From Malacoraja senta (taxonomy: Eukaryota), in contig CM075998.1 in assembly GCA_038087875.1 (NCBI GenBank), forward strand, positions 2,170,001-2,234,000: a stretch of DNA of 64,000 nucleotides, read 5' to 3'. This document shows positions 2,561-56,463 of the stretch, piece after piece (position 1 is the stretch's first letter; the number at the start of each line of letters is the position of its first letter). Below the pieces are notes generated by a model. That model was not told the origin of the DNA. It saw only the letters and a list, made by a program, of their open reading frames with translations, and searched no databases. The position numbers and the translations under genes were made by a program.

Positions 2561-2677
2561 TGTAGGAAGGAACTGCAGATGCTGGTTTAAACTGAAGATA
2601 GACACAAATAGCTGGAATAACTCAGTGGGACAAGCAGCATCTCTGGAGAGAAGGAATGGGTGACGTTTCGGGTCGAG
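2561..2677 (-). mobile_element. Short Penelope-derived hammerhead element, truncated in stem II
   Basis: Matches the 26785-26905 terminal repeat; TSD-like AAAATC(C)TTTTGT on both flanks. Confidence 0.85.
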
Positions 2678-4470
2678 AAAATCTTTTGTCTGTCTGTCTG
2701 CTTTGACCGCCTTTTACCTATGTTTTCCCTCTTTCTATTGCGGACTTGTGTAAGGATATTCAGAGATGCCGTCTAATCTTTGCAGTGCACGATGTAAATA
2801 GAATTTGTTCCATACACTCTAACTAGAAATCTCTATCAGATTTAAACCTGTACAACATAAGCCATTGAGTTGGAACCACAATGCACAGACACCCAAGTAA
2901 GGCTGTAATTCAATTAAATTCAACACTTTAAGTGACTGTAAAATAGTTTATTTGAATTTTATATTGTCCTGCATGTTGTACATATATAAACAATTGAAAG
3001 AAATACACATATGCCTGAGACTTGAATGAGGAGGGCAAGACTGTTCCCTCTGACACTTCCACTTGTTCCTATCGAATTTCTATTGAGTAAAATAATACTG
3101 ATCTAATGGTAAATGTATGTGCCACTATAACTGGATTAACCAGTTTCCTTTATCTTCAGAATGTGATTTGAAAAAAAGGTTGCGTGCAAGTAATTCTATA
3201 TGTCAGAAATGCAGCACAGCTTACTTGCTTGTACTACTGTTGCCTTTCCACAAGCATTGGATAATTTGAATCCCAGTGAGTAATTTTCACCTTTATTCTA
3301 AGAGTAAAATCGTTATTGTTAATCTGATATTTGACAAAGAATGGTTCAAAATTTAAATCAAAAATAAACTTCACCTGGAACTTCCCCTCAGTCATGGAAT
3401 GAGCATGTAGTGAGTGTGGTGTGGTGAAGCTGACATTTAAACACTGAAACCAAAGCGTTGCAATTTTAAAGATGTACCTTTTTAGTAGCTTCAAAAAAAT
3501 TGGGCTTTACAGAATGAATGAGAGCTCTTCTTAAAATTAAACCTTTTTAGTGCTTTGCATTGTAGTTGACAACTGCAAAAGATCTCTTGGTGAAAGATAT
3601 TTCTTGCAGCCTTCATTCTGAAAGCTGATAATGCAGAGAAGCTTGGTTGAATGATGAAGTAATCATTTGGAGTTCTCTGAATTTCTCTACTCCATATTTT
3701 TCCTTTTAAATGTAATACACTCAAATCAAAGTCAGTCCTCTAGACGGGATGAATATGGAAACTCTCAGTTGAGTGTATTTGAATCCTGAAACCGCAATGC
3801 AGCTGTAATTCAGTTTGCACTTCTTAAATATAATTGATATTTGTTCATTTCTAGCATAAGCATTGTTATGCACATGTAGTATTTAATAACTTAAACTCCT
3901 ACAGCCAGTTTGATGGATATTAAACTGGTGAATCAGCTCCTTCATTTTGCTGAGTTGCAAAGAGGAAGGAAAAAAATACTCTTTGGACCAAATCTTGTTA
4001 TTGCTAATTGATTATGACAGTTTTCTTCCTTGGAACATCAACATGGAAGGAGCCCAAGAAATGGACTGGAAGGGGTTCTGCCAACAGAAAATTGAGGCAA
4101 TGACGGACTTTCTTTTGAATGAGCACAGGGATTTGGGTGCCGGTGGAAATGGCAAAGAATGAGACATTTGATGAGTATGACTTGGTTTGGGACGGGCAGC
4201 AGAATTTTTGAGATGTTTGAACTTTGTTCTTGGGATGCTAGTAATGAGGATATTGGTGAAATTTGGGATAAGGAAAATTTGATAAAGTTGGCATCACTTT
4301 GAGGGATAAAATGTACAATGCGCAAGAGATGGATGTTGCTGTGGCAATGGATAAAATGTGAGTTTGAAACTTTGTACACAGTGTCACAAACAAATTGTGT
4401 TTGCATTGGGTAGAGTATCATTTAGAATCTGAAGATTTTATGCCATGAAAAATCAATGCAATGGTACATG

Positions 4471-4602
4471 TGTAGAAAGGAACTGCAGATGTTAGTTTAC
4501 ACCAAAGATAGACACAAATTGTTAGAGTAACTCAGCGGATCAGGCAGCAACTCTGGGGGAAAAGGAATAGGTGACGTTTTGGGTCGAGACCCTTCTTCAG
4601 AC
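4471..4602 (-). mobile_element. Short Penelope-derived hammerhead element
   Basis: aactgcagatg...gtaactcagc...gtgacgttttgggtcgagacccttcttcagac. Confidence 0.88.
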
Positions 4603-6437
4603 AAGTCCTTGTGGACACAGAAGGGAACGATTCCATTTAGTATTCGCCTAGCACTGAGGGCTGTTTAAGATTGTGACATTTCCAGATTTTGTGTGTGTGC
4701 TTCCTCATGCAAGGTGCATGGATTGGTGCCTAAAGTGCCATATGATGCAAATGTATATTTTATGGATCTAGCTCTTTTGTTTCTAAATGTTTCTCTGCTC
4801 TTTCTAAAGTTATTTTTTAAAGCAAAAACATTTCCACTAAATGGAATGAGACCAAAGTATATATACTCTTTGCATCGAGTAATTTGCAACCTGAAAAGCT
4901 AGAGAGGGAATGAGTCAGCCTTCAAATTACGTAGTGTTTTCATAACCATTCAGCTCCTTCATTTAAAGTCACTTGTTGCATTTGGAGCTGCGGCACATTG
5001 CACAAGGACTCCAAAAGTATCCATTGTGCTACAGCAACAAAGGGACAAGTCAACATGTCAAACCCTCATAGTAACTCTGTAAGTTCTAAATATTTTATCT
5101 AAATGTTTTACATTCGAGGAGTGCTACCTTTCGCAGTTGTGCATTCTCTGTATTTGATATATATTAAGTTCAGATCTGAACTTTTGCCTTTTGTCCATAA
5201 TTTGGTCAAAAGATGTACCATTATCATCCAGAATGATTCATTTTAAAATTAACTTTACAAATGCTTATTTACAAACTAATTTCCACTCCTCACCTGTGTT
5301 TGTTGTGTAGTTATTACAAATTATAATAGCCACAGCCTCCAATAATGTCAGCGTTAAACAGTTTCTGTCAGTTTCCATCGTCTTTGTGATTTTAATTTAA
5401 CACTGATCCCTGAATTAATTCTAATTTTATATTTTTATGAAAACCCACTGATTTGAATTATATTCTGATTGACTTTGCTGTTGGCCCAGCTTAATTGAAA
5501 GCCTGATCTTTTTAAAATTCATTGGAGATTAAATGTTAACGGATTGGAAATGGAACAGATTTAAGGTCTATACTAAACTTGTTAACAGAGCAAATCTTAA
5601 GTCATCGTGCTGAATTGGCCCATTCTAGCAAGTTAGTAATTGGATTTAAATGTTGCCAAGTGCAAGTGTATTAGGTTGGAACCTTGGTTGAAATTGATAG
5701 TTTTTAATATTTTGCATTTAGTAGCTAATTAATAGCTTGGAATCTGCATTTATGGTGTACTTGTAAAACTAAGCAGTGCCTACTACAGGGAATGGTAGTA
5801 CTGTGGTGTAAATTTATCTTTTTTTAATCCATCTTTGATCACTCAATGTTTACTCTACTTCAGGATGAATCAATCTGGTATGTGTAATTTCCAAAGTGAA
5901 AACCTGTTTTTCACTTATCCAGGGTAGCAACAGTGTTGTGGTGTGAAGATAAAGCACCTACATTAGTATTTTATATGTAGCTTTCCATTGTCTTTATCAT
6001 TCATGTACAAACTTGGATTGTTTGTATTGATTCTTTCAACAGTGGAGTGTTTCAAATTCAAATGCAGAACATCTTTGCTTAAGATCCCCGCTTAAACTTG
6101 CTCAAAGGACTGGGTATTAAAGTAGTCTGCATGAAAGGATATTTTTCATTGGATATCTTTCTCTCCCCCCCCCCCCCCCCCCCCCTTGCTCAGATCAAAT
6201 TGCATTTCTACATTTTTTCTTCTATCCTCTTACCCTGCCCACCACAATACACTGAAGTGAATCAGGAATATACTTTGTTGGACCCCAGATTAATATCTCA
6301 TTTGAAAAGTGGGCTCTGCTCTCTAACTGCATTGGAGCAGGGCTTGAACCTTTGAGCACAGGCTGAACAAAACCAGACAAATGCATGCATAAAACCTTGA
6401 TTTTTAATCATTTTTTTATCAGCTGTGGTGCAGTCCT

Positions 6438-8727: not shown

Positions 8728-8879
8728 TGTAGAAACAAGAACTGCAGATGCTGGCTTGCACAAAAGGACACAAAGTGCAGGAGAGTATGAGGAAAGGTCT
8801 CCACCTGAAACGTCACCTATCCATGTTCTCCACAGATGCTGCTTGACCCGCTGAGTTATTCCAGCACTTTGTATCCTTT
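8728..8879. mobile_element. Penelope-derived element, inverted (fold-back) arrangement
   Basis: Antisense tail at 8728-8782 is followed by a sense copy; arms aaaggacacaaagtgc and gcactttgtatccttt are complementary. Confidence 0.8.
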
Positions 8880-9075
8880 CATGATTTGAGAGGAAATGGG
8901 ACTGAATAAGATGCTCTATGATTGGGAACAGAATGATGGAATCCTGTGCTGTAACAATTGTTATTAATTTAACACAACCAAATGAGATGATGAGCCTTCT
9001 CTCAATTGTGAATGAAATGGAATCATTGTGACATCTGATAAATAGCCAGCTCACACTAACTTATAATGTGGAAAC

Positions 9076-9257
9076 CTGGAACTACAGATACTGGTTTATC
9101 AAGGAAATACACAAAATGCTGGAGGAACCCAATGGGTCAGGTAGCATCCTGGAGGACATGGATCATGGATAGGTAACATTTGGGTCTTTTAGTTTAATTT
9201 TAAACTAAAGGGTCTGGACCCTTCTTCAGATGTTTTGGGTCGAGACCCTTCTTCAGA
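9076..9257 (-). mobile_element. Penelope-derived element with duplicated hammerhead half
   Basis: gggtctggacccttcttcaga is followed by gggtcgagacccttcttcaga, with an AT-rich hairpin insert just before. Confidence 0.8.
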
Positions 9258-9419
9258 TGGTTTGAATAAGCTCATCACAAGTTTGAATAAGCTGAATATT
9301 ACAGAGAAGTTGAGAATAGCAACTCTTGACATCAAGGTAGCATTCATGCAGCAGGAAGTCCAGCAAAGATGAAGTGATTATGGGTTAATGGTAGAACATT
9401 TTGTAGCTGGAGTTATTTT

Positions 9420-10065: not shown

Positions 10066-10255
10066 AATAAAAACAAACTGCTGGAAAGACTCAGCAGTCA
10101 GCAGAAAGAGAAGCAGAGTTGGCATTTATGATCAAAGACCCTTATTCAGACCCTTCATCTGAAAAATGCTCTGCCCATTTCCAAAGATGCTGCCGGACCC
10201 GCTGAATATTTCCAGCGTTTTCTGTTTTTATTTCAGACTTTCCTATATCTGCAAA
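10066..10255. mobile_element. Older inverted Penelope-derived element
   Basis: aaactgctggaaagactcagc ... gatgctgccggacccgctgaatatttccagcgttttctg. Confidence 0.7.
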
Positions 10256-11861: not shown

Positions 11862-13150
11862 TTGGTTCATTATTGTTGCATCTAGTGTGGTACAGTGCGA
11901 ATCTTTGTTTAGCATGCTATCCAGGCAAATCATACCATACATCATAAAATAAAGTGCAGCTTCAAAGAAAGTGCAGATTAAAAACAGTGCAAGTGGCATT
12001 CAGAATAGGATGTTTTCTATGGTACATCTGTAGAAATTGATAAGTTAGTGGAGACATGCTGAATTTCCTTAGTCTTGTGAGGAAGTAGAGGTGTTGGTCT
12101 ACTTGGCCACAGCAATAACATGGTTGGACAAGATCAAATTGTTGGTGATATTTACAGCAAGGAACCTGAAGCTCTTGACCATCTCCACGTCAGCACCATT
12201 GATACAGACTTGGGCGTGTACTTCACCCCACTTCCTGAAACCGGCCAGCACCTTTGTCTTGCTGGCATTGAGGGGTAGGTTGTTGTCTTGACACCATGTT
12301 ACTAAGCACGCAATCTCCTTCCTGTGCTCCATCTCATCATTGTTTGAGATCCGGCCACTACGGTGGTGTCATTTCAAACTTGTGAATGGAGTTAAAGCTG
12401 AATTTGGTCACACAGCCATATAGGGGGTGCAGGGGGCTGAGAACGCATCTTTGTGGGCCACGGGCGTTGAGAATTATTATTTGGAATGTTTTGTCGCCTA
12501 TCCTTGATGATTGTGGTGTGTGTCAGGATGATGAGAATCCAGCTTTGGAGAGGTGTGCCCACTCCAAGGGCCATGTTTTTGGAGATGAGTTTGGTTGGAA
12601 TTATAGTATTGAAGGCAGAGCTGCAGTCAATAAATGGGAGTCTGTCCTAGGTGTCCTTGGTATCCAGATGTTCCAGAGCTGAGTGTGGGGCCATGGAGAT
12701 AGTCTGATGAAGGGTCTTGACCCAAAACGTCACCCATTCCTTCTCTTCAGAGATGCTGCCTGTCCCGCTGAGTTAATCCAGCATTTTGTGTCTGCTAAGG
12801 AGATAGTGTCTGCCGTGGACCTGTTGCAGTGATAGGTGAATTGCAGTAGATCACGGCTGTCTGGGAGGCTGGGGTTGATGTGCACCATGACCAATCTCTT
12901 GAAGCACTTTGTGATAGTGGATGTCAGAGTCACTGGGCGACAATCATTAAGGCAAGCTTCCTTACTTTTCACGGGATTACAGTGGTCTTCTGAAAGCAAG
13001 TGGGAACCTCGGATTGGTGTAGGGAGAGGTTAAAGATGTCCGCGAATACTTCTGCCAACTTGTCCATGAGCACGTGTCCAAGGACTACATCTGGGCCAAT
13101 TGCTTTCTGAGAGCAAAAGCCAACCTGACATCTATGATGGTAACCATAGG
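11862..13150 (-). mobile_element. Degenerate Rex1/Babar-type LINE (RT fragments and 3' UTR)
   Basis: Minus-strand peptides [23 protein letters not shown]...[14 protein letters not shown] and WCQDNNLPLNASKTK...VKSFRFL. The 3' tail resembles 6560-6620. Confidence 0.85.
12704..12798 (+). mobile_element. Penelope-derived hammerhead element nested in a Rex/Babar LINE
   Basis: CTGATGA-AGGGTCTTGACCC-AAAACGTC; direct repeat GGAGATAGT at 12695-12703 and 12799-12807. Confidence 0.88.
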
Positions 13151-19802: not shown

Positions 19803-20498
19803 ATGCCCGATGGACTTTATATGCCCGAAACATGGAAGCTGCGCTCATTCAAATGAGCATAACTTCCATGTTTGCATTGATGATTCCCAGCTCTACCACT
19901 CTACTCTTAACTGCTTCTATGCTGTTGGGTTTGTGAGTATTTTATTTTAAAAATCCTGCTAAATTGTATAACTCCTGATGTCTTCCTTTTGACTGCACCC
20001 TGAAGTGATGTAGGACATTTCATAACATGCCCTTAACAGAAAATATGTCACACTTGTCCAACAAACCAAAATTTGGAAGATTTCAATTTATGAATGCGGA
20101 CAACTTTATTCAAGGGAATTTTGTTTTGGCAGGTTGAATTTGTTGTAATTTTACCCTATATTTTGGGTAACAGTTGTGCAAACTGAAATCTGCTGCTCAA
20201 GGATTGAAGGACCTTTTCTGTCATTGTTTTTAAGCCTTGCTCATTCCAGATTCTCTGGTTTTAAAATTAATTTGGACTTTTGCAATTGGGTACAATGCGC
20301 CTTTATGAAGATGATAGTCGTTAAACAAGATTGTGGTTGTATCAGCTGCTAGTGTCTCTTCAGCTGAGTTAATTTAAATAATGCATGAGATAAAGTTGTG
20401 TGTGAGAATTAACTAAGCTGTTAATTTCGTTTTAAAAATTAGCTCTTATGTCATAAAGCAGAAAAAAAAAAAGTGGAATAAAGCTTGGTCATCTCACT

Positions 20499-20697
20499 TG
20501 TGTAGGAAGGAACTGCAGATGCTGGTTGAAACCGAAGATAGACACAAAATGCTGGACTATCTCAGCCAGGCAGCATATCTGGAAAGAAGGAATGGATGAT
20601 GTTCAAAATAAGTGTTTCGACCCGAAACATCACCCATTCCTTCTCTCCAGAGATGCTGCCTGTCCCACTGAGTTACTCCAGCATTTTGTGTCTACCT
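20499..20697. mobile_element. Inverted (fold-back) Penelope-derived element
   Basis: Antisense then sense copy; perfect 14-bp TSD TTGGTCATCTCACT at 20485-20498 and 20698-20711. Confidence 0.92.
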
Positions 20698-21197
20698 TTG
20701 GTCATCTCACTCCTTTGTAATGATTGTCCATTGAAACTAAGAAAATATAAAGGTTTTGGGGTGTAGGGTAGATGTAATTCTTTTATGATCCCTTCTCATC
20801 GTGTATGGATTTCGAAGACACAAAAAATAAGTTTGTTTACAAAAGTGCAAGATGTTAGGTTTTCTGACTGTACAGGTGCAATTGGCAAATAAAGGGAATC
20901 AAATCCAAATGCACATTGAGAAAAGCATGATTAATAATACTATATAGAGATCAATAATTCTGTTTGAAACTATGCTGACTGACTGATGTGTAAGATTTCT
21001 GCCTCCTCTCAGTAAATCTGTGACACTGCCCCAGAATATAAATACAAAAAAAAGTTCTCACTATTGATAAGTGAAGCGTTGTCCACCTTGTGTGCCTCAC
21101 CAAATTTGGTCAATTAATTTAGAAGATGTCAAGCACTGAGATCCTGAAATATGTTGAACCTTGATCAGTATTCTGTATCTTGAGTCTTGGCCATACA

Positions 21198-25125: not shown

Positions 25126-25245
25126 CAGTCTGAAGAAAGATCTCGAGCCAAACGTTGTCTGGCCATCCCTTCCACAGATGCTGCCTGACCTGCTGAGCTC
25201 CTCCAGCTGTTGTTTTTTGCTTGGGATTCCAGCACCTAGAGTCTC
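25126..25245 (+). mobile_element. Penelope-derived element, diverged
   Basis: cagtctgaagaaagatctcgagccaaacgtt...gatgctgcctgacctgctgagctcctccagc. Confidence 0.8.
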
Positions 25246-25749: not shown

Positions 25750-25890
25750 ATTATCTGGCCATTATCACATTGCAGTTTGTGGGAGCCTGTGCTTCCTACA
25801 TTACAATAGTGGCTACACTTCAGAGGAGAGCTTCACTGACTACAATGCTTTTGGGTAGCCTGGGGTTGTGAAAAGCACTGCATAGGTCAT
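25750..25890 (+). mobile_element. DeuSINE (SacSINE1/AmnSINE1-like) 3' remnant
   Basis: ccattatcacattgcagtttgtgggagc...ttcctacattacaatagtggctacacttca...gttgtgaaaagcactgcata. Confidence 0.7.
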
Positions 25891-25893
25891 GTC

Positions 25894-26018
25894 GAAGGTA
25901 GACAAAAACGCTGGAGAAACTCAGCGGGTGAGGCAGCATCTATGCTGCCTCACCCGCTGAGTTTCTCCAGCTTTTTTGTCTAACTTCAATTTTTCCAGCA
26001 TCTGCAGTTCTTTCTTAA
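25894..26018. mobile_element. Fold-back Penelope-derived element forming a near-perfect hairpin
   Basis: 46-bp arms at 25894-25939 and 25942-25987; TSD GCATA(G/A)GTCATGTC at 25880-25893 and 26019-26032. Confidence 0.9.
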
Positions 26019-26312
26019 GCATAAGTCATGTCTGTCTGTCTTTTGAGTTTTGCTACCAACAGTGTCTATGGACATTAACCTTCAATTCCTGCAGACTCCA
26101 AAGCGTTGAGTCCCTTCAGGGTCAATAACCTTAGTGCTGTTGTTTGCTTGTAAATTAAGTATCTTTGTTTTCTACACATTCAGCGAGATGGGCCAAGTCT
26201 ATCTGCTGAATTATGCCAGTAACATGGAGTGCTCGTGGTTGTAGGAGGGGAAAGTCCATCTGTTTGCAGGGAAGCTGGATCAGCGTCCCTGTAAAAAGTG
26301 GAGCAAAAAGCT

Positions 26313-26905
26313 ACACTTGTCGCTTTACCTCCCCCCTTGACTCCATTCAAGGACCCAAGCAGTCTTTCCAGGTGCGGCAGAGGTTCACCTGCACCTCCTC
26401 CAACCTCGTCTATTGCATCCGCTGCTCTAGATGTCAGCTGCTCTACATTGGTGAGACCGAGCGTAGGCTTGGCGATCGCTTCGCCGAACACCTCCGCTCG
26501 GTTCGCAATAACCAACCTGATCTCCCAGTGGCTCAGCACTTCAACTCCCCCTCCCATTCCGAATCCGACCTTTCTGTCCTCGGCCTCCTCCATGGCCAGA
26601 GTGAGGACCACCGTAAATTGGAGGAGCAGCACCTCATATTTCGCTTGGGCAGTTTGCACCCCAGCGGTATGAACATTGACTTCTCTAATTTCAGGTAGTC
26701 CTTACTTTCTCCTCCCCTTCTCAGCTCTCCCTCAGCCCACTGGCTCCACCTCTTCCTTTCTTCTTCCCGTCCCCCACCCTCACATCAGTCTGAAGAAGGG
26801 TTTTGGCCCAAAACGTTGCCTATTTCCTTCGCTCCATAGATGCTGCCTCACCCACTGAGTTTCACCAGCACTTTTGTCTACCTTTGATTTTGCAGTTCCT
26901 TCTTA
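26313..26905 (+). mobile_element. 5'-truncated Penelope-like retroelement: GIY-YIG endonuclease C-terminal ORF plus 3' terminal repeat with hammerhead motif
   Basis: Open frame to 26698 (NLVYCIRCSRCQLLYIGETERRLGDRFAEH...VAQHF...GMN). CTGAAGA-AGGGTTTTGGCCC-AAAACGTT at 26790-26817. 11-bp TSD AGCAAAAAGCT at 26302-26312 and 26906-26916. Confidence 0.93.
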
Positions 26906-29693: not shown

Positions 29694-32292
29694 CATCAAT
29701 GCTTCCAGTATTGCTGTGGGACACTGAAATGTATTTCATGAACCCATCCTCAAGATCACCTTTTGTCAATTTGATTTGAGCAGTCTCTGAAGATTTTAGA
29801 TATGATAGAGGCATTTAAGAGGCTTATGGATATGCAGGGATATGGATTAGGTGCTGGTAGATAAGAGATGGTCTTGGCATCATGTTCGGCACAGGTCAAA
29901 GGTCCATTTCTTGTGCTGTACCATTTTATATTCAGATTTCCAATGGTCAGTACACAACTTTTATTACAGTCCCTATTATTTCATGATTGATGCCATGTCC
30001 ATCAGTACTGTTTCTGTCAGGGAATCTCTAGACTTCTCACTAGTATTTTTTAATTGTCTTTTTGTGTTGCTCCGATCTTTAGCCGAGGTGCGTATCTCCC
30101 TATCCTCATGCAATTTGTTATTATCAGAGTTGCTATCTCTTTCATTTTTCACCCCCCCCCCCCTCCATTTCCATTCTGCCTAGTTTTCCAAGCGATCAAG
30201 TACCCTGAAACATTCAATTTACAGGGTTGTCCACCTTGAAGTTATGTCTCTATAAAGGCCAAGAGATCAAGCCCATTTTATCTCTATTTTTGCTGCAAAC
30301 TTGTCTATCATGTTATGAATCCTCCATGCACCTACATAAAGACCCATTAGTTTTTTTTTTAACCCATTTGACCCTATTTACTGCTGATCTATTACCCCAT
30401 ACCCTTTGGCTTTCAAACGATGACATGCTTCAAAAATATTTCATGGGGTGCAGAACACTTTGGGTTATCTTGTGGCTATGAAAGACATGAGAGAATTGAA
30501 GTTTATTTTTAATTGTTCTTGCGCATTTCTGTTGTTTAAGAAGAGTTAGAAGGATAGACAGTTAAATGTGTCTATCTTTGATCAATGAAGACAAATTGTG
30601 CTCCAATGGAAACACTAATTTGTTCAAATGAAGGAATTGAATTGTATACTTGGGTCGCTCCATTAAGTGGTCAGCAGTCTCATTTTCTGAGCTCTGGAAT
30701 TCATTACGAGGAGATGCACAAAATAAGTTTGTGGTGCACTGCAGGCAGCTTTTTGGTTCTGTTCCAATTTAATGGGATTTATTTATTGCGGATTGTTTCT
30801 GAACTGATTTGTCAAAATGAAAATGATCTGTAAAGGGGTCCTTCATAAAGGAGCTGAAAGGATTTAAGCAAGAGGACAGACTTATGTGGTCCGCAGCTTG
30901 GACATTGCCAACATTACAATTGAGTGAAAGGAAGAATGTTTGTTGTGGGACTCAGGACTCTCATGCACCCAAGTTATATTTTCGAGCTTTTTTTCCTGAT
31001 ATTTCTTGATTAAATGTCGAGGTGTTTCGGGAAACATTTGTATTTAAGTGCGAGAGATGACAAGCAAATCGCATATTTAATCAGCAAACTTCCTAAGAGC
31101 GGTTAAGAAGTATAATTTGTTGGTATATTCAGCATAATTTTGTTGACCAATTTGTGCAATGTATTGTGTTGTCTGTATAATCTTTTAATTTGATGTGTCG
31201 TTAATGCTTTCATAGTTGCATGCTGCTTGCAGTCTTTAAAAGATATTTAAGTTATATCTACAGTCATAGTTTACCGCTGGGCTTGGAAATAAAAAAAACT
31301 GAGCACATGTCCTCGTGGAACTGAGAAATCCTTTCTCCTCGAGCTGATTTTTCCCTTGCCTTCTTGACAAGGTGTTGGCTTTTTTATTGTGGTTCTGTCT
31401 CTTTGTCACTGTTTGCCCTTAGTGCTTGATCAAAGTACCCATTTAAGTCAACAACACATATGAAAGGCAGCCCAACCACAGGGGAGGTTGTCCTCTGTTA
31501 TTCCTGATTGAGTTCTCCCCTGATGCTTGTGTACTTCCAGCAGGGATCACTGGATGGGGGATTGGGAACAACAACCTATTTCTCCAATCCAGCCAGTTGT
31601 AGTTGACAGCTGCTGTTCTGTTAAGCACAGATCTGAAACTGAACTGTGACAACCTGGTTGGGTTTATCTTATCCATTCACTGGATAAATGTTGGTGCCAT
31701 TAGAGATGCATATTAAAAATCTTTCAGACTGCACATTTCCCTGGCGGACAACCCAGAAAATTGCAAGCCTCTTCAATTTTGCATGCTTCCTCTTTTCCTC
31801 TCATCCATATAGGTTGGGTAGAGTACTACGAACTCCCAAATACTGAGCCACCAGATGCATTCAGCGCTGTTCAAATGACCACAATTGCTTGGGAATCCAA
31901 GATTCCGCAATTGGCTTTTCAAAATGTTGACCTTTTTCATGTTGTCAATTTGAATAGATATAGCCCTTCAGAAGGGAAATACACGTTGTAAAATATTTTC
32001 ATAATAAAAGCCTTTCACTATATGAATAGGTTGGTACTGATTGTAATATTCCTGACGTATTTAGCTAATGTAAATAGCATTTTAACAGCATTTTTGAAGC
32101 GGTTTTGACTGAAAAATGTTTGAAGATTATTCTGCACAATTAAATTAAATCAAGATTATTATTCTTCTGCAGCAAGGTGCAAGGCAGCAATCGTTCAGGG
32201 CTGAATGTAAAGTTCATAAATTTAAACTTCCTATCTATATATAATAAAGGAGCTGTTCTGTTTTTAATACTTGCTGAAGCCTCCATTTTAAT

Positions 32293-32431
32293 GTGTAGAA
32301 AAGAACTGCAGACGCTGGTTTAAATTGAAGGTAGACAAAATGCTGGAGTAACTCAGCAGGACAGGCAGCATCTCCGGAGAGAAGGAATGGGTGAGGTTTT
32401 GGGTCGAGACCCTTCTTCAGACCATTTGTCT
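32293..32431 (-). mobile_element. Short Penelope-derived hammerhead element
   Basis: Full unit; 12-bp TSD GCCTCCATTTTA at 32279-32290 and 32432-32443. Confidence 0.9.
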
Positions 32432-34221: not shown

Positions 34222-34315
34222 CAGTCTGAAGGGTCTCAACTCGAAACGTCACCTATTCCTTTTCTCCAGAGATGTTGCCTGACCCTCTGAGTTGCTCCAG
34301 CATTTTGTGTCTATC
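34222..34315 (+). mobile_element. Penelope-derived element nested in a CR1 relic
   Basis: cagtctgaagggtctcaactcgaaacgtcacc...ctccagcattttgtgtctatc. Confidence 0.85.
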
Positions 34316-34638
34316 AATGGTTAGACAACTTTTGTCAAGGGGCCTTTGGGGATGAGTGACCATAATGTGATCAATGATGTAAAACATTGTGAAACTAGGG
34401 GTTTAAATTAAACAAAGAATGCAATGAAGGCATGAGGGTAGAAGAGTTGGCCGTGGTACATTGGGAGAACACGTTGAAAGGCATGACGGTGGATAGACAG
34501 TGATTAGCATTTTAAAGAAATAGTGCACATTTAAAAAAAAGTTAATGCACAAAAAAACAACAGGGCAAGTAATTCATCAGTAGACTGACTTGAGAATGCG
34601 GGTGGTATTAAATTAAAAGAGGCATATAAAGTTGCCAG

Positions 34639-34720
34639 GGTCTCGACCTGAAACATCACACATTCCTTCTCTCCAGAGATGCTGCCTGTCCTGCTGAGTT
34701 ACTCCAGCATTTTGTGTCTA
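34639..34720 (+). mobile_element. 5'-truncated Penelope-derived element nested in a CR1 relic
   Basis: Starts in stem II; TSD TTGCCAG at 34632-34638 and 34721-34727. Confidence 0.85.
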
Positions 34721-36745
34721 TTGCCAGCAATGGTAGTAGGTTGGCTGAGGTTGGCAGCTTTTTAGAATAACTGGTGAGTAGAGATGAAACATTTCTTCCC
34801 TCGGGGTGGTGAACCTTTAGAATTCTCTGCCACGGAATGTTATGTGGACTTGATCATTATGTTAATTCAAAACAGAAGTCTGATATCTAGGCATCAAGAG
34901 AATTGAGGTTTATGAGGGTAACGCTGGAAAATGGCGCGGAGGTACATGATCAGCCAAGATCTTAATGATTGATAGAGTGATCTCGACAGGACAATGGTGC
35001 AATTCTGCTCCTTATGCTAAGTTTGGCATGGAATCGGCCTGGGGTTGCTCTTCCTCTGTACTATAATGAAAGCTTTAAGTTCAAATATGTGCTTGAGTGG
35101 GATGCAAATGCCCAGCTGAATCATCCCCTTGCTGATTTAAGAGCAGTCTTGCTAAAGTTGGGCAATGTAAATCAAAATGATGAAACAAAAATGAGAGAGG
35201 TTTTTAAATGGTAAAGGACAATGGGTCCCACTTGTCAACCAAGTTAGTGATGGATCTGGGCACAGCTTGGGTGTCATCCAAAGCTGTACCAAACACAGGG
35301 TTCCAGATTTTACTGGCAGTATATGCCACATTAAGTGAACGTAACTGCCGTAATGTGAGCCTTGGTGCTCCTGTGATTAGGTGGGTATTATTAAACCAGT
35401 CATGATTCCAGCTCCGGATGCTCCTTTATGGTGAAGGCAAATTGAGCTCAGCTGTAATATTCTTTTTTTTGTTCGAACCCCCACTTGCCTCTTCTTGAAT
35501 CTTTTTTAAAAAAATTGAATAAATAAGCTGTTAACTTCCTGTCAAAGCTCTCGAATGAATAGCCACCTGGACAAGGTGCTGCATCAGCAATAGAATCGTA
35601 TCCTAGCAAATACACAAAAGGAGAAAATTGGAAAGAAACAAATAGATAAAAAGAAACAGATGGAAAATATGACCTGCATTTTAAATGGCAGTTTGTTTTT
35701 GCTCGTTATGTATGAGACTTGCAGTTTGGTTCTCAGCAGGCATTTACTACTGGACCAGAGTGGTCTGCTACCATGGCAAATCCACTGGTTGCCATGACAG
35801 TTTTTGAATTGGATATTTTAATACATAAAGTAGAAAGTCTTTGTTTTTTATTCAGACTAATTTTGCATTCGTAGAACTGAAAGGCCAAGGATTATGGGAA
35901 TTGTACTATGGGGATGGTTTGTTGATTCTGTCAGTTTGGCTTATGACTCGAGCACAATGATAAATTGCATGGATGCATTTCATCCACGGGATTGAATCTG
36001 TTAGAATCTTTTTTTTTCCCCTTTTAAACTGAATGCATTTGTGAATTTAATCCCTGAAGTTAAATTGGATAAATTCTCTCCTGGACAATTATAAAGCAAT
36101 GTGAATTCTATGAAGCAGCATTTTTGTGTTTTTGTTTCAAATTTAGCTGTTACAATTGTAAATCCCTGTTATTTCATTGACCTTCGAGCTGCTTGTAAAG
36201 TCCAATTATGAATCTTCATCGAATTTTAAAGAAAAATAAATTTCAAATTGCAGGTAATGTTTTATCTTTAACCTGGGTTATTTTACATTTATTTTGCTTG
36301 TTTTTCGTGTTGGTAGAAAGCAGCCAAGATTAAAGAAGTATTTTGTGTAAAATGTTATTGTGGTCCAGATACAGCACTAATTGTGTCACGTGATTGCTCT
36401 CGAGGTTGAACTTAATATAGTGAATGCTCAGCTTCTGTTCATAGGAGGTGAAAGAAATAGGAGTGTAGTGTGTGTCTGAAGCTGTTTTCTGACTACTGAG
36501 TGGTGTTAAATGCTGCTGTAATGAAGGCTTTAGTCCAAACTGACCAGTCTCCTGGTTGAAAGATGAACTTTGATAGGTGGCCACTATGCTGGTGGAGGGA
36601 GCAGGGAAGTGGGTGGTGAAGTTCTCCGGAACAATTTAATCTGTAAAAGTGTTCTTTTGGATATGTGGATTATTTCTGAAATGATCTGTTTCTCGAGTAA
36701 CACATATTCATAGCTGATTTGTTACTACCAAATCAAAGAATGGAT

Positions 36746-36864
36746 TGTGTAGGAAGGAACATCGAAGATAGACAGAAAATGCTGGAGTAACTCAGCAGGT
36801 CAGGCAGCATCTCTGGATAGAAGGAATGGGTGACGTTTTGGGTCGAGACCCTTCTTCAGACTGA
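36746..36864 (-). mobile_element. Short Penelope-derived hammerhead element
   Basis: gctggagtaactcagc...tgacgttttgggtcgagacccttcttcagactga. Confidence 0.88.
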
Positions 36865-37431
36865 TTACTGCACAGCTCAAACCATAAAAGTAACCCCACC
36901 CCCTCCCCCCACCACCCCAACCTCCTCCTACCTGCTCTCCCTGAAATCATTTTCAAACGTATTATCCATCTCTTGAGCAGTATAGGTTTAAAGCACTAGC
37001 ATTTTGTAAGCTCCTCTTACTGGGATCTTTAAGCCGACAATTTACCTTGATGATGATTTGGGGCGCCATACTGGGCTCTTAATTTTATTCGCAATATGTA
37101 TGCTTGATGCAGAGAAGAGATACCAAAGGTGGAAATGTTCCATCTTTACTTTGTACTATTACTTTGTATGACCAGAACAAAATCTACATTTTCAGCATAG
37201 TCGTGTTTATGTAAAATAAGCCATATATCTCAAATGCTGAATGGTAGCATCAACTCTGTACAAATCTTCTCTTATATTGTTTTACTTGTGGTATTCACTA
37301 TTTATTGTGGTTGTGGGAAAATTCATGCTCCGTACCTATTCCCTCTTAGCTGAAGGCAGATAATCACTGGTAAGCAGTTGAGAACATGAGGCAATGAGCA
37401 AGTAAACAGCAGTGTCAAAGGCTCTAATTTA

Positions 37432-37975
37432 AAAAAAAGTGCTGGAGGAACTCAGCGGGTCAGGCAGCTTCTGCGGACGGAATGCACACCTGACATTTGG
37501 GGTCGGCCCCCTTCTTCAGACTGATTGGAGTGCGGTGGGGGAGGGTGGGTGGGGGGAGCTAAACCTGGAAGAGAGAGGTGGGGGTGTGACAAAATCTGGC
37601 AAGTGAGAGGTGGATACAGGTGAGGGGGTAGATTGGCAGATGGGTGGAGATAGTGACAACAGCTGGAGATGAAAGAGGGACAAACGGGTGTCAGATGTGG
37701 AAAGAAAAGGAGTGAAATGTAAATCTGGAGGCTTGGGTTGGTTGGAGTGGGGGAAAGAAGGGATATAGGGAAAATGTGGGACCCGGAGAAGGGAGATGAA
37801 TGTACAAAGGAGGGGAAGGAGTAGGTGAATGTGGGAGTGGGATAAATGTGTGTGCACGGGGAGGGCGGGTGACGTGTAGTGGAGATAGTACTTGAAATTG
37901 GAGAATTTATGTGCATACCATTGGATTGTACGCTACATAAGCAGGTCATACAGCTGGGTTGTAAGCTACCCAAGT
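37432..37975 (-). mobile_element. Second, more decayed Penelope-like 3' fragment
   Basis: The minus strand carries remnants of the LGSLxPxGMxIxFSNF endonuclease C-terminus, a pyrimidine-rich 3' UTR and the same terminal repeat (CAGTCTGAAGAAGGGG...GCTGCCTGACCCGCTGAGTTCCTCCAGCAC). Confidence 0.85.
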
Positions 37976-39896: not shown

Positions 39897-40170
39897 GACA
39901 CGAGACTGTAAATGCTGGAATCTTGAGCAAAAAAAAACAAACTGCTGGAGGAACTCAGCATGCCAGCCAGCATCCATGGAGGGAGATGCACAGGTGACAT
40001 TTTGAGTCAGCACTATATAAATACTTCCAGTGCATTTTTAATCTTGTGATCTGTGCGACAACTAGTTTGACCGAGTCTGAAGAAGGGTCCCGGCTTGAAA
40101 CGTTGTCTGTCATTTTTCCTCCACAAATGTGGCCTGACCCACTGAGTTCCTCCAGCAGTTTTGTGTTTTG
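39897..40170. mobile_element. Inverted Penelope-derived element
   Basis: Antisense arm to ~40012 and sense arm from ~40074; TSD-like CTAATGAAAnnTGTT at 39882 and 40171. Confidence 0.82.
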
Positions 40171-41087: not shown

Positions 41088-41348
<261 letters not shown>

Positions 41349-42280
41349 TAGTGGGTGGAATCCTGTTCGGAGAGGGGCAACAAGTGAACTTCATGTTAAA
41401 TTCTTTGTACAGCAGCTGTTTCAAAGATTAAAAGGGAAGTTAATACACTCCAAAAACAATGAAACATGACATATATATTTCTGTATTTAAATCCTCTTGT
41501 AATATTGGCCAGCGCACTATTTGCCTTCCTAATTGCTTGTTGCATCTGCACGTTTACTGTCCTTGAATTGTAGGCAGTAATGTTTCCTAATCTGCCAACA
41601 CTTTTTTAAAAATCTGCTCTTTTGTTTTATCTACCAAAGTTAAAGATCTCGTATTAAGTTCTATCTGCTGTGTTCTCATCCAATAGCATATGTTGGCTGT
41701 ATCCCCTTGAAACCTCTTTACATTGTTATCTCTCATTTTGTGTCATGAGGTGATGTTTGAGGCTCCTGTAGATATGGACATTACCAGGGCAAGATGTATA
41801 TTAATGTTTACATTTGAAGCTCGCACTTGCCAACCTGTTTTTGTCAATGCTCAAGCAACAATTGTCAACTGCAAACATTTAAGTTTGAAAATGAGGGGGA
41901 CAGAAATTGGTTATCTAATCTTGCAGGGAACATGACTGAATAATAAGTAATTCTTACAGGATAGAAGATCAGGTGCATTGGCGTGTAATTATTGGTAAAC
42001 GTAGAACTTGGTTTGAACATAAGACTACAGTAAAATACCTTCCATGCCCAATCCTTCACATAGAATAGTAGATAAGTCAAGGGGAATAGGTGTGGCAAAG
42101 GCACTTCACAGCTCGTTGATATACTTGTAAAGGAGCTTCATTAAATAACCAAACAAAAACCAGACTGAAGAATATCAAGGATAAGAGCAGACATACCTGG
42201 AAAATTAATAATGATTCTTGTGCCACAAATTAATTGATGATTCTTGTGCCACAAAGGACATGAAAACATGCGCAATTAAC

Positions 42281-42410
42281 TGAAAAAGGGTCTTGACTCG
42301 AAACGTCACCCATTCCTTCTCTCCAGAGATGCTGCCTGTCCTGCTGAGTTACTCCAGCATTTTGTGTCTACCTTTGATTTAAACCAGCATCTGCAGTTTT
42401 TTCTTACACA
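42281..42410 (+). mobile_element. Full-length short Penelope-derived hammerhead element
   Basis: ctgaaaaagggtcttgactcgaaacgtc...gcatctgcagtt...acaca; TSD CAATTAAC at 42273-42280 and 42411-42418. Confidence 0.9.
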
Positions 42411-45169
42411 CAATTAACATAACCAGCTTCAATTAAGAGTGCAAATTGTAATATGTTGGGTTGATGTCTGGGAGGTTTGCAAGTTTGCTGTTAACTCCCT
42501 GGGAGATATTTGTTGCCTATTTTTCTCTGGTTCCCCATTTCCACATGAATTACTGAAATTGAGTAGAATTCCTGAAGAATACATATTAACTGGTCTGTTG
42601 AAAGAAGGCTTGGTAGTAAAGTAACTTTCCGTCCCAATTTTTTTGCATCAACTGCAAACACTCAATTTTAGATCTACATATTTTTTAAGGGAGGAAATTA
42701 AACTAAGAATATTTTATCGTTGGAATCTTTTTACAAGGTTCAATTACGTAAATATGCCCTTGGGTAGCAGCTCAACTGATTTGTGCCAGTTGGTTGTGAT
42801 ATGCAGTTCTGAAATGGAGATATCTGTGATCTTTTCGTTGTTGCCAGTTCATCAGGTGCCACTTTTTTTCTGTAAAAACAGACTCAGAAGAAAAAAATCC
42901 CCTAAATTTAAAATCCCCTAAATGATTGTGTTTTACCTTATACAGCCATGCTAGGTGGTAGATCACAAGATAAAATCAGCTGGGTTACAAATACATCATT
43001 TACTTTAGAAACAAAAGGTAAGCTAAAGTGCTCTTTAACCTTTAATGCAAGGGCTGCCACTGTCTTAAATACCATTTATGCATTGGGGTGGGCGGTGATG
43101 ATAAATGGCAGATTTGCTGGGTGATGGAAACCTGTATATTTTATTGTGGCTGAGCACACGCCCAGTGAGATGTTTTCTTTGAATTGAATGCTCCGGAGAC
43201 TTTTCTACCTCTAGAATGGGGAAAATTCCCGGCTTAACATTAAAACCGAATTTGGGGAGATTTCATAGCTGATGAAACTAACATCCTAAAGCACTTCATA
43301 GTTAGTTCACTAACTGCGGTAGATGATCATTTAACGCTTGTGCAAACGATCGGTGAATCCTGCAGGCCATTGTTTAGAATACTTCATTATGTGTTTTAGT
43401 TAATTAAATTAGTTGGCATACAATTACTCAATGTAGCTTGTTCCTTTTGCGGGTTTGTATTGCTGATCAACCGAGCTTCTATAACAAATCTACATGAATT
43501 TGTCTAACGCCATCTTGTGATTGGCAAAAGTGAATACAATACATTTGTGATTATTTGGAATTTATTGAAGGAAAGGTGTTTATTCATGTCATTCGTTTGA
43601 CCCGCCAGCTTGTATTGGAATTGTCTTTTCCCAGTGAAATTAATTGGAGAACAAGGCTTATGCCTGTGGTCTTCAAAGCTGTTTTGTCATATCTTACCCA
43701 AGCCATAATGGACCTTGCCTGCTGTTAGCTCCCACACTTATTCCTCCCATCATCCAATGCCATTTTTGCAACTTCCAGCATAGTGGCAATACCAAAAACG
43801 TTTTCTCCCCCCTCTGAATTTGAGGGGACCAGCTGGCCAACTTTTCAATCACTCCCAATATTCACTGCATTTCCTGCAGCATCTTCTGTGCAATTGCAGG
43901 AGGTCATTTTTCAAGCGCAAAAAAAAAAACCATTCCAACTAACCAATCTTATTAACCACTACTATGGCCTAATGGTGTGTTTAAAATGTTCATTACGTTC
44001 AAACTTAATGCGCAAACCAGATAAAATACAGTGCAATTGAATGCACGATATTAAATGTTACCATCGAGACAGAGGATTGAGTTGAAGTATTCTTGGCACT
44101 ACCTTCCATTGTTCGGTATTCTAAACGATTATTTTGGGATAAAAAGCAAAGAACTTCATTCTCAATTGAGTGTGCTGTTATCACATTGTTGTTCATCACT
44201 TTATGATAACATTGCCTTCATTGGTGAAAGTTTACTGTAAATATATGGTACTTTCTGCCATTTGTGCACTTTATCACGTGTCACTTACCTGTCTAAGCCA
44301 GTGAGTGTCATATCAGTGTCACATGAGGTTCAAAGATCACATTTTTCAGAAGATGCTGAAAATTCAGACAGGCTGTTCACCGTGAAGGATAGTTCTTTGC
44401 ATGCAACCACAAGATTGTAAGCTATTTTGCTCTTGCTTTGTTATAATTCTTTCTATCTTCGCAAATTCTTTACAACTAATCCAATTCTATCTTCTATCTG
44501 GGGTTTTTAATCAGCATTGGTCATTTTGTCGCTTTTGTAAATTTATGGTTTAAGGTTAAAAATTTGAATTTAAATTACGTTTAATTTATTCCCATTTAAA
44601 AAAATAAATCTTCGGTTTCGTCTTCTAGTTTTTTCCCTCCCCCCTTATTTTCCCGTGAATGCTGATTCACGCTGGTGTACATGTATGTGACTTCACATCC
44701 TCTTTCTTGTCTAAGTGACTGTGTCTACGTGTGAGATTATTCACTAGGTTTTAGCAAAGTAATTGAGTGCAGTAGCATGACAGCTGAGCCTGATTCTGCT
44801 CTCAGCAGACGTCAACATGCAATTTATTAGCCTTGTGTGAATTACTAAATAGAAATCAGTGCCCCTGTTGTATTTCCTCCTCTTTCTCTCGAGACAGGCC
44901 ATTTGGGCTCCCACTGCCATAATAACAATTTTTAACAAATCTGTGAGATCGCATTTCCTCAGGAATTTGGTATAGAGGGGATTGAGCTTTATTAAACGAT
45001 AGAGTTGCATTCAAGTAGCAAATCAGTTTATAATCTGTATAATTGCAAAAAAAAATTGAAGATTGCAGCTGGTTTCTTCAGTGTTGTTCTATCCTAATTT
45101 AAATTTCTGCAGTACAAGAGTTTTATTTTTCTAAGTTTTTTTTCCCCTCTCTCTAATTGTTGTTGGTCA

Positions 45170-48053: not shown

Positions 48054-48174
48054 TCTATTAGTTTGAAATCTAGCCACGAGAATTTGGGCTGCACCCGAGC
48101 AAATGAGCTCAGATGTGCCCGACATTTGTTCGAAAAATGAATTTTTGCAGCACTATTACACTGTTTCTCTCTAA

Positions 48175-48319
48175 GAAAGAATTGCAGATGCTGGAAAAAT
48201 CGAAGGTAAACTAAAAATTTCGGGTCTGAAGAAGGATCTCGACCCGAAACGTCACCTAATCCTTCGCTCCATAGATGCTGCCTCACCCACTGAGTTTCTC
48301 CAGAATTTTTGTCTACCTT
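48175..48319. mobile_element. Inverted Penelope-derived element carrying the intact hammerhead core
   Basis: Perfect 14-bp TSD CTGTTTCTCTCTAA at 48161-48174 and 48320-48333. Confidence 0.92.
48222..48257 (+). ncRNA. Minimal type-I hammerhead ribozyme motif with intact catalytic core, inside a Penelope-derived element
   Basis: GGGT-CTGAAGA-A-GGATC-TC-GACCC-GAAA-CG-TC^ACCT: stem I GGGT/ACCT, stem II with one mismatch, palindromic ACGT stem III, GUC cleavage triplet at 48251-48253. Confidence 0.7.
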
Positions 48320-49508
48320 CTGTTTCTCTCTAATATCGTTATATTTTATTCTGCAGCTTGCCTTAAATATGTAATCCCTGATTCTCGATTGACAAATAAC
48401 TATTATGGAAGATACAAAAATTTGATTGAATCTGAACAGCAAAAACCATTTCCAAGTCATTGTATTAATTCACATTAGTGTCCTATTACAGTGAGAGCAT
48501 TGAATTATATTGGATTTTTGTTCTTTTGTGTTCTTTTGGAGATGTATCACATTTTAACATACAGGTAGTTATAATGTGTGAGCCACGTTCCTAGGAATCC
48601 TTGTGTTATAGAAAACCGCATGATTAAAAACAAGTGTCATTTGGGGTAATGGGGGGTTGAATGCCACTCACGATAACCAATTTATTTTTCTTTGCAGAAT
48701 TTTCAGAAATAAAGATCTTTTTAATAGCTTTAAGTTTATTTTTGTTACTGCAAGCTCAAAATACTAAAGTATTTATGATACATTGTTTAATAGAGTAAAG
48801 TTGCACAAGTGTCAGTAGATGCAATTGCTTGTCAATTTCAATGGCTGCCTGTGGTATAACTGACTCTGTTCTCAAGAGAATAGGATGTCACTTCCCAAAT
48901 TCATCTTTAGTCTTTCTCACAGTCCCAAGGTAAAATTTCTGAGCTTGGCTTTCTCCCCTTACCATAAGCTCTGTAGAGGCCCTAATGACACTCTCAGATG
49001 ACACCAAGGACATTCCTTCCTTAAACTCTTGTAAAAAAAAACTCTGATATTCTACCCTGGTAACACATATTCTACCTCTTTTTTGCTGATCATCAGTCCC
49101 TTGACATGTTGAATCATCATTTGCCTCACAATTCTATTTCCTTTTATTCTATGGCTGTCGATTCTCATTTATTTCTCATTCTCGATGGGTCGAACAGCCT
49201 AATTCTACTCCTATGACTTAAACATGAATTTTATTGTCACCCCTCTTGATCAGAGACTTGCATATTTTGGATTGATTAATAAATGTTCCCGTTGATTCGA
49301 GCTCGTGTTAATGTACAGAGATGCTGCTTTTTTTTAGAACATGCTTATTATGAGGGGAAAGTAAGTGCATGGTAATGAAGGCTTTCAGCCTGGAATGTCC
49401 AGCATTTTCTGTTTTAATTTCATACGTAATGTCCAATTCAAGGTAGCATCTTAATGAAATCTGACCTTGCGTGATTAATGCTCATCTGATCATTTTCTCT
49501 CTTTCTAG

Positions 49509-55549: not shown

Positions 55550-55681
55550 GGGAGGAGTGCCGTGACATCGACGTGATGCCAGACCATATCCTTCAGCCCG
55601 TCCCTGACAGACCTTCTTTTATAGATAGGCTTGCTAACAGCATTGCAAAAAGAAAAAGATCTACTCCACAGAAATTTGTTG
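55550..55681 (+). CDS. ikzf4: IKZF4 coding exon 6 (GEECRDIDVMPD...DRLANSIAKRKRSTPQKFV)
   Basis: Tandem CAGCAG acceptor (alternative start 55547) and G|GTAAGA donor, 132 nt. Contains the conserved KRKxSxPQKF motif. Confidence 0.95.
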
Positions 55682-56380
55682 GTAAGAACTCATTTATATT
55701 TTTTCAATTCCCTAGAAGGACAGTGGATGGTTAGGGTTTGCACAACTATTTCCACATTTTGAAGCTTAAAGATGTTTCCCCAGTAGTAACATAAATGTTT
55801 TTCTGTACTTGAAACTTGATTTTGAGGGACTAAACTCGACAGAAGTGACCTGTACTAATTTGTACAAACTAAACAACGCCATTCTGGGTATTCTGCTTAA
55901 TCCACTCATTTGGATGCACATAGTCTTGGTTTGAAGGTTTCCAAAAGCACAAATTTAGATTGTATTAAATTAAATTAAATATTAAATATGCAATGCAATT
56001 CTCAACAATATTACAAAAGCTCAAATGAAACGGTTATATTAATCATCCACTGTTCAAATACCTTCTGTTGGATTTAGAGTCGGGCCTTTAGTGACACTAC
56101 ATCTAGAGAATTCTATTTGTTTTGAAGTTTTCTGTCACTGCCAGGTAGAAATGTGAAATCTTTCTGGCTGCTTTTAGATTGTATTTATAAGTTTTGGTTG
56201 TTTTTTTATTCCAGAGCTATTTCAAATTCCTGACCGTTATCTAACCTTAGCTTGGCTCATCCATATTTCCCTCATTACTGTACAGATTCTCCTTTGTAAA
56301 ATCATGATTTCCATGTACTTTGCTTTTGCAGTTATCTTCATTGCATTGGTAACGCAAAAGTCCAACAAGAATTTAGTCAT

Positions 56381-56463
56381 AGGTAGACACAAAATGCTGG
56401 AGTAACTCAGTGGGACAGGCAGCATCTCCGGAGAGGAGGAATGGGTGACGTTTCGGGTCGAGA
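56381..56463 (-). mobile_element. Truncated Penelope-derived element
   Basis: gtagacacaaaatgctggagtaactcag...gtgacgtttcgggtcgaga; flanked by GAATTTAG(T/A)CAT. Confidence 0.85.

Follow-up and report, generated by a model that had tools for sequence, protein, structure and literature searches.

Penelope-like elements (PLEs) carry minimal hammerhead ribozymes in their terminal repeats, and dispersed single minimal hammerheads, described in 2014 as "probably related to truncated PLEs", occur in many animals including fishes (Cervera and de la Pena 2014, PMC4209133). PLE insertions are marked by strong 5' truncation and an inverted 5'-truncated copy; they may have a tail of 30-40 bp at one end or the other, and their hammerhead lies close to the 3' end (Craig et al. 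2021, PMC8557442). In the PLE of Anolis, the tail is the stretch between two adjacent internal start sites of reverse transcription, and both DNA strands are cut and extended (Frangieh et al. 2024, PMC11167929). Shorter relatives have also been described: animal retrozymes lacking long terminal repeats (non-LTR retrozymes) are found together with PLEs, which are proposed to mobilise them (PMC7229834; bioRxiv 10.64898/2026.07.22.740005), and non-autonomous PLE derivatives are under discussion (PMC8557442; bioRxiv 10.64898/2026.07.22.740005). Here, we analyse a stretch of 64,000 nucleotides of the skate Malacoraja senta (contig CM075998.1; hereafter the window, numbered from its first letter), in which a hammerhead-bearing unit of about 100-140 bp is repeated on both strands. 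We show that this unit is the 3'-terminal module of a PLE, and that the sharp 5' end of its copies is not set by self-cleavage of the hammerhead.

The unit was first described from the window as a sequence of about 130 bp recurring some 20 times on both strands, and this description holds. Searches with blastn, using two unit copies as the query, gave around 22 loci, and an nhmmer profile made from nine copies (140 positions) gave 28 matches on both strands between positions 2558 and 56472, which total about 2.8 kb, or 4.4% of the window. These matches amount to about 24 insertions and four inverted tail pieces, with no strand bias (about 13 units on the plus and 11 on the minus strand). The preliminary consensus matches that of the profile, in which the CUGA box lies at positions 7-10, the GUC site at 32-34, the short 3' end near 97-104 and the long 3' end near 137. 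The core of the hammerhead is itself a distinctive string, since 28 nt of it are found at seven sites of the window with three mismatches or fewer, and at none in 100 shuffles. The density of the unit is about one copy per 2.7 kb in the window and one per 4 kb in little skate (L003). It is the dominant short repeat of the window, as first proposed. The list of copies said to begin near the CUGA box needs partial amendment: the coordinates 4471, 32293 and 36746 belong to minus-strand copies and are their 3' tail ends, the corresponding CUGA boxes being at the high-coordinate end (about 4600, 32420 and 36859).

The relation of the unit to PLEs is given by the only GIY-YIG-coding fragment of the window. 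This piece of open reading frame (ORF) on the plus strand (26306-26692) is the 3' end of a PLE ORF, corresponding to its GIY-YIG endonuclease part, and is truncated in 5' at about 26306-26313. It is followed by a stop codon (26695-26697), a C/T-rich spacer that starts with GTAGT and ends with CAG (26695-26789) and the CUGA box at 26790, so that the unit and its tail (26786-26910) are continuous with the end of the ORF, as had been noticed initially. The Pfam score of the fragment for GIY-YIG is 22.1 bits, just below the cut-off of 22.6, and we found 111 homologs, several of which have the reverse transcriptase (RT) motif FLRYIDD upstream of GIY-YIG, and a CX4CxxC linker. Because the unit follows an ORF whose homologs show the RT-then-GIY-YIG architecture, it is the 3'-terminal module of a PLE, and its Penelope ancestry is supported. 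Contigs of a related species that run past the loose end at 26313 extend the ORF copy of the window upstream with the CX4CxxC linker. Zn-finger-like linkers of this sort are a feature of the Neptune/Nematis side of PLEs (PMC8557442), and the parent element therefore probably belongs to a Neptune-type group. A second long copy on the minus strand (37431-37960) includes the last few codons of the ORF, then about 370 nt of C-rich spacer with a terminal CAG, and the unit at 37431-37523. Upstream PLE sequence, of about 440-475 nt, was present in only two of the 24 insertions, and neither the window nor the little skate locus nor the contigs examined yielded a full-length PLE of the parent family.

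The copies share a remarkably narrow 5' boundary. In thirteen of the 24 insertions, the first base falls in the stretch that opens 7 nt ahead of the CUGA box and closes 1 nt into it. Five others start in or next to helix II (profile 9-20) and four further in, while the remaining two run about 440-475 nt upstream. Having 13 of 24 starts within a 16-nt window is very improbable under constant-hazard truncation (P = 1.5e-10). The same boundary was found elsewhere: profile positions 3-8 are again the starting point of six copies in a 24-kb stretch of little skate, and of copies from three further public contigs. We also aligned the contigs of eight public runs (eight organisms, all of related species) to the ORF-attached copy 26786-26910, without taking contig depth profiles as copy numbers. 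The best-supported loose ends with heterogeneous A/T-rich flanks fell at 26785-26790 (5' side), where each DNA-type run contributed 122-368 contigs, and at 26882-26884 (3' side). The loose ends at 26615, 26824 and 26874 were rejected as ends of copies, because their consistent consensus continues the family sequence, as expected from alignment breaks. Hence, the clustering of 5' ends at the edge of the hammerhead, proposed in the preliminary description, is confirmed in the window and in the contigs of the eight runs. About 28 nt separate this cluster from the predicted GUC cut site further inside the unit, and no hot spot of ends was found at the position of the site in the reference copy (26817/26818) in the contigs of the eight runs. 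Given this upstream position of the ends, the 5' end of the copies is not set by self-cleavage. The notion of a ribozyme-defined retroposon is not supported, and the 3' ends are two termini of the PLE type.

Several details of this boundary are informative. Head-to-head pairs may be joined exactly at the 5' edge of the unit (L003:12158 and L005:1270), and the internal joints onto 26787 show an extra G before AGTCTGA in three runs (X1, X17 and X19). An extra G at the 5' ends of retroelements would fit the copying of a cap. It also fits run-off of the RT at the 5' end of the RNA. The boundary reads TCA|GTC, which matches the initiator-like motif YYANWYY, and the Penelope of Drosophila virilis has a TATA-less internal promoter with an initiator, similar to that of long interspersed nuclear elements (LINEs; PMC2377424).

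The unit has all the hammerhead core elements that had been named. Its consensus includes CUGAAGA, an extra A before helix II, the GGGUC/GACCC helix II closed by a G-C pair, GAAA, an ACGU palindrome in place of helix III, and GUC. The catalytic boxes (CUGANGA, GAAA and the UH triplet) are present in type I order once the CpG at 26-27 is restored, and every copy covering the position has an A after CUGAAGA. The G10.1-C11.1 pair closing helix II, the GAAA, the palindromic 15.2-16.2 (ACGU) used for helix III, the GUC and the location in a terminal repeat are all shared with published PLE minimal hammerheads, as are the thousands of dispersed single motifs per genome, which were interpreted in that study as truncated PLEs (PMC4209133). 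The sequence GAAACGUC holds the ACGU palindrome and no helix III, as in dimer-capable minimal hammerheads. In contrast, helix I in the skate is limited in cis to about 2 bp, the U-A and G-C pairs beside the core (AGU vs ACC, by manual reading), whereas most PLE minimal hammerheads have 4-5 bp; the D. virilis variant has 2 bp (PMC4209133). The Rfam search that had been suggested as a check was run on the whole window, where no covariance model reached its gathering threshold, and on the best copy, which gave no hammerhead match at E up to 10. A motif lacking helix III is expected to escape these models. The unit does not fold more stably than its shuffles (z = 0.19 and -0.24 for the two forms), its minimum-energy fold pairs the CUGA box with a downstream CCUUCU run instead of forming the hammerhead, and in cofolding two copies pair without specifically giving a hammerhead dimer. 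Such a weak fold with a sequestered CUGA box fits the published need of minimal hammerheads for dimerization or help from proteins (PMC4209133, PMC11167929). All catalytic boxes are intact in only three of 22 copies, although individual boxes are kept in most, and the commonest lesion is the change of G12 to A at a CpG (seven copies). Since few copies keep the full set of boxes and non-CpG divergence from the consensus spans 1.2% to 28%, the copies decay neutrally and the family has long been active, with a young main subfamily (1-5% non-CpG divergence) that has no long member in the window.

A hammerhead-bearing, short and non-coding unit related to the terminal repeats of PLEs invites comparison with animal non-LTR retrozymes (PMC7229834; bioRxiv 10.64898/2026.07.22.740005). 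Under this explanation, dimeric hammerheads would cleave tandem or circular RNAs of the unit at GUC, and a rolling-circle mechanism would copy them. A few observations point in this direction. Head-to-tail joints (26882 to 26785 and 26884 to 26787) occur in single contigs of two runs. A 27-nt piece (9236-9262) begins at the 5' hot spot, stops at the GUC site or at most 2 nt from it, and is fused to a second unit start, and the arms of inverted pairs in L006/L007 and in L008 start at the ACGT/GUC position. The last two observations are anecdotal hints of hammerhead cleavage in vivo. Retrozymes are, however, found as tandem arrays with canonical type I hammerheads and circular RNAs, whereas the skate copies are dispersed monomers: there are no head-to-tail arrays in the window, the contig joints just mentioned being the only unit-to-unit ones, the motif is of the minimal PLE type and has no Rfam match even at E up to 10, and the ends are off the cut site in 22 of the 24 copies and in the loose ends of the contigs. 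The unit is thus not a retrozyme, because of the missing arrays in the window, the minimal motif and the position of its ends, and we regard a retrozyme-like mode of propagation as very improbable.

The anatomy of the insertions leads instead to PLE machinery. Nine copies are directly abutted by target-site duplications (TSDs) of 7-14 bp, found by computation and manual reading. A flanking repeat of at least 8 nt has a chance of 1.05% per locus, and the probability of at least four of 22 is 8e-5. The copies are therefore separate insertions with TSDs of their own, as first thought. A profile-anchored alignment separates two classes of 3' ends, which differ by about 35-40 nt: about nine copies are of a short form that stops near ...GTCTA(CC), and about ten of a long form that stops near ...CTACACA. 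Isolated inverted pieces of the 35-40-nt tail lie directly 5' of units at 8733-8783, 28815-28862 and 48168-48219 of the window and at L004:2046-2099, and head-to-head pairs of units were found at 20498-20702, 25870-26022 and 39902-40164, as well as in contigs of other species. In one case, a single 14-bp TSD encloses an inverted tail, a spacer and a unit (48168-48325), which shows that the whole structure was made in one event. Optional tails, inverted 5' pieces, variable TSDs and 5' truncation are the signature of PLE insertion. The likeness to described elements (PMC8557442, PMC11167929) extends to two 3' ends about 35-40 nt apart, tails at either end, inverted 5' partial copies, A/T-rich flanks, and a hammerhead some 70-110 nt upstream of the 3' ends with no end at its cut site. 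The skate unit departs from these elements in its truncation, which is not graded, since more than half of the copies stop in a 16-nt window.

Single units inside a TSD, as we observe, might also be left by recombination between the direct repeats of full-length PLEs, which would turn the copies into solo terminal repeats. Yet there is no full-length or 5'-repeat-bearing element in the window or in the skate locus, the youngest copies are all short, and neither the inverted tail enclosed with a unit in one TSD (48168-48325) nor the mixture of 3' ends is explained in this way. We thus give this scenario very little credit.

Because the tail of the Anolis PLE lies between two internal starts of reverse transcription, the two 3' ends of the skate unit may by analogy correspond to two RT start sites. 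Each of the alternative 3' ends is preceded by a CCAGCAU motif. The segment GAUGCUG (profile 54-61) can pair with CCAGCAU at either 82-89 or 112-119 (e.g. at 42327-42393 in the window), and alternative hairpins may therefore form at the two places where reverse transcription is presumed to start.

Taken together, these data make it rather probable that the short units are PLE 3' modules inserted repeatedly by the PLE RT/GIY-YIG endonuclease, with a 5' end produced by run-off at the 5' end of the RNA. The enzyme would insert very short copies of the 3' module many times. Reverse transcription would begin at two adjacent internal sites, giving either the short form ending near ...GTCTACC or the long form with its additional tail of 35-40 nt, and the complementary DNA would run off at the 5' end, 0-3 nt before the CUGA box. 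If the transcript started at the motif, the RT start sites would be about 95 and 135 nt from its 5' end, which would account for the short and the long units. The minimal hammerhead would then be cargo of the module, not the maker of its ends. Most copies are dead on arrival or decayed.

The narrow boundary might also arise if the RT, working on a long PLE RNA template, dropped off at a folded or protein-bound hammerhead. Truncation within the hammerhead indeed has a hazard about 30 times that of the sequence flanking it on both sides, and five copies form a secondary cluster of ends inside helix II. However, the main cluster lies beyond the whole motif, on its 5' side, where helix II has already been copied, and the stability predicted for the fold is unremarkable (z about 0). 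Furthermore, the Anolis RT copies through its hammerhead region to the end of the template in vitro, and mutants of the core give products of the same size (PMC11167929). The head-to-head joints placed exactly at the boundary, and the extra G, fit run-off better. A stop at the fold is thus disfavoured, and we consider it improbable.

Several points weigh against our preferred explanation, repeated insertion of 3' modules ended by run-off. The start mapped in D. virilis is 46 nt upstream of the intron that ends at the hammerhead, not at the motif (PMC2377424, PMC4209133). Some copies have 5-14 nt of upstream spacer (36745 on the minus strand, 25126 on the plus strand, and L004:1360), which makes the boundary a cluster and not a point. 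The second, small cluster of starts inside helix II (five copies) looks more like pausing or truncation, and the initiator is a short motif, matched by chance at about 1 in 250 positions. The eight runs, being contigs, show the DNA ends of copies and not RNA starts or levels. The RNA 5' end is inferred, and the RT start sites are suggested by analogy with a single lizard element. The end positions of thousands of natural insertions argue that self-cleavage of the hammerhead does not shape the inserted copy, which agrees with the one available in vitro study (PMC11167929). The choice of the template end by PLEs is a poorly understood step, for which the sharp boundary of the skate family provides a natural data set.

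Did the short units themselves become mobile? They could be self-propagating non-autonomous elements, with an internal promoter for RNA polymerase II (Pol II), an initiator at their first base and RT starts of their own, depending on PLE proteins in trans. The very high density of copies in the window and in little skate (one per 2.7 kb and one per 4 kb in L003) is compatible with such an element, as is the young main subfamily without a long member in the window. PLEs are known to have internal promoters (PMC2377424) and to initiate reverse transcription internally (PMC11167929), and non-autonomous derivatives have been proposed (PMC8557442; bioRxiv 10.64898/2026.07.22.740005). On the other hand, transcription of solitary copies from their own first base is hypothetical, and the same picture would result from an autonomous PLE that undergoes heavy 5' truncation and has an abundant 5'-proximal product. 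Most copies lack the catalytic core and show plain neutral decay, and the structure of subfamilies was sampled from only 24 copies. We see self-propagation as unlikely. In its full form, the unit of about 96-135 nt would be a self-sufficient Pol II mini-retroposon with an initiator at its first base, and its solitary copies would re-amplify through PLE proteins acting in trans; this we hold to be a little more doubtful still. If it were true, skates could have in the order of a million copies, should the local density apply genome-wide. The role of the hammerhead at the extreme 5' end would in this case be restricted to the finished transcript, from which it might, for instance, release a capped leader of 31 nt, and the internal RT starts of PLEs would set the 3' end regardless of the downstream sequence.

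The unit had been called SINE-like, after short interspersed nuclear elements (SINEs). It resembles these elements, among which the Sm-alpha repeats of Schistosoma also bear a hammerhead (cited in PMC4209133), in being short, non-autonomous and abundant, in having TSDs and in sharing its 3' end with an autonomous partner. The resemblance stops at the head of the unit, where no sequence of the type transcribed by RNA polymerase III (Pol III) was found, and at its partner, which is a PLE and not a LINE. ARAGORN identified no tRNA gene, and Rfam gave no match to a tRNA, 7SL or 5S head in the window. Hence, the unit is not a SINE in the strict sense, because it lacks a Pol III head. Helix II is faintly reminiscent of a B box, but the unit is too short ahead of it to hold an A box and lacks a tRNA-like fold, and we rejected this reading. 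The unit behaves as a non-autonomous, partner-dependent short retroposon, and is best filed among PLE 3'-terminal mini-insertions.

Dispersed hammerheads of this kind have been known since 2014. What may be new, in a modest way, is the sharp 5' boundary, the initiator-like motif and the density of copies. The host is a skate, and a boundary at the edge of the motif is absent from the discussion of the earlier work (PMC4209133). We found no named elasmobranch family and no description of the unit from cartilaginous fishes in the searchable literature; Repbase and Dfam were not queried. The family looks like one of the most numerous repeats of this cartilaginous-fish genome, and its annotation as Penelope-derived is advisable.

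The individual copies illustrate the variety of these insertions. Complete units with a tail were found at 4468-4604 (minus strand; profile 3-138, with G12 lost at the CpG), at 32291-32425 (minus strand), the youngest copy, with 1.2% non-CpG divergence and a 12-bp TSD (TAAAATGGAGGC), and at 42278-42411 (plus strand; 2.4% non-CpG divergence), where the TSD CAATTAAC adjoins the CUGA box. Three further minus-strand copies have a tail and some irregularity. The first (2558-2679) has its 5' end inside helix II (profile 17-138) and a TSD of about ACAAAAG(G)ATTTT, and another (36745-36862) has an internal deletion of the tail. The third (9078-9262) is preceded by the extra 27-nt piece at about 9236-9262 and carries an internal palindromic insertion of 23 nt; this A/T-rich palindrome (9188-9210) lies within helix II and is flanked by duplicated GACCC.

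Short-form units without inverted neighbours include one starting at the CUGA box (12699-12800, plus strand; TSD GGAGATAGT), one with a stuttered 5' end and a second AGTCTGATGA piece upstream (34226-34323, plus strand), one with its 5' end in helix II (34636-34722, plus strand; TSD TTGCCAG) and one on the minus strand at 56375-56472 (TSD CTAAATTC). Inverted tails accompany three units. In 8733-8887, the tail (8733-8783, minus strand) abuts a short-form unit (8784-8887, plus strand). In 28734-28862, a minus-strand unit with intact catalytic boxes (28734-28819) has the tail on its 5' side (28815-28862, plus strand). In 48168-48325, the minus-strand tail (48168-48219) is associated with a 15-nt spacer and a plus-strand short-form unit (48222-48325), the one with the best-preserved hammerhead core of the window, all within the TSD CTGTTTCTCTCTAA.

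Among the head-to-head structures, the pair at 20498-20702 joins a minus arm with a tail (20498-20616) to a short-form plus arm (20601-20702), its junction falling within the hammerhead region. The pair at 25870-26022 consists of 5'-truncated units (profile about 51-138) with a palindromic junction. The arms of the pair at 39902-40164 are a divergent minus-strand unit truncated in helix II (39902-40013) and a plus-strand unit starting with (A)GTCTGA, with intact catalytic boxes and the TSD TTTGACCGA (40074-40164). A divergent inverted pair of partial units was found at 10070-10227 by its profile matches. The remaining copies are a plus-strand unit of a divergent subfamily, which starts about 14 nt before the CUGA box (25126-25242; TSD TTGATTCC), and a divergent plus-strand copy detected only with the profile (29556-29686).

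In the PLE of Anolis, the motif overlaps the start of the ORF, and we considered whether the skate unit could similarly be the coding N-terminus of a PLE ORF. One frame is open over 45 codons, and in the copy at 42280-42414 it spans the whole unit, but a coding role is unsupported: a search of 1.8 billion proteins with the frame of the unit returned spurious short ORFs or gene models and one unrelated repeat protein. Translations of this frame occur in 20 short predicted proteins or gene models of public data (P0112-P0132). The repeat is thus drawn into gene predictions, and is perhaps exonised in some.

The spacer between the ORF and the unit (26695-26789) has intron-like features, with GTAGT right at the stop codon and a polypyrimidine-CAG end, and the spacer of the second long copy (37524-37900, minus strand) is also C/T-rich and ends in CAG. 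The Penelope of D. virilis has an intron that ends at helix I of the hammerhead (PMC4209133). The contigs of the eight runs contain no GT..AG joint across the spacer 26695-26789, the joints there being non-canonical length variants, and we found no clearly spliced genomic copy, the spacer of the plus-strand copy at 48222 being only loosely similar to the end of the ORF. An intron at this place is unsupported, though conceivable.

Finally, a public contig from ENA (ctg53251c, L002; 10.4 kb) consists of a tandem array with a period of 1195 bp. No hammerhead unit of the skate family was found in the array. Each of its repeats has a piece that shares 87% identity with the initial 31 residues of the GIY-YIG fragment of the window, and the array may be a PLE-derived satellite.

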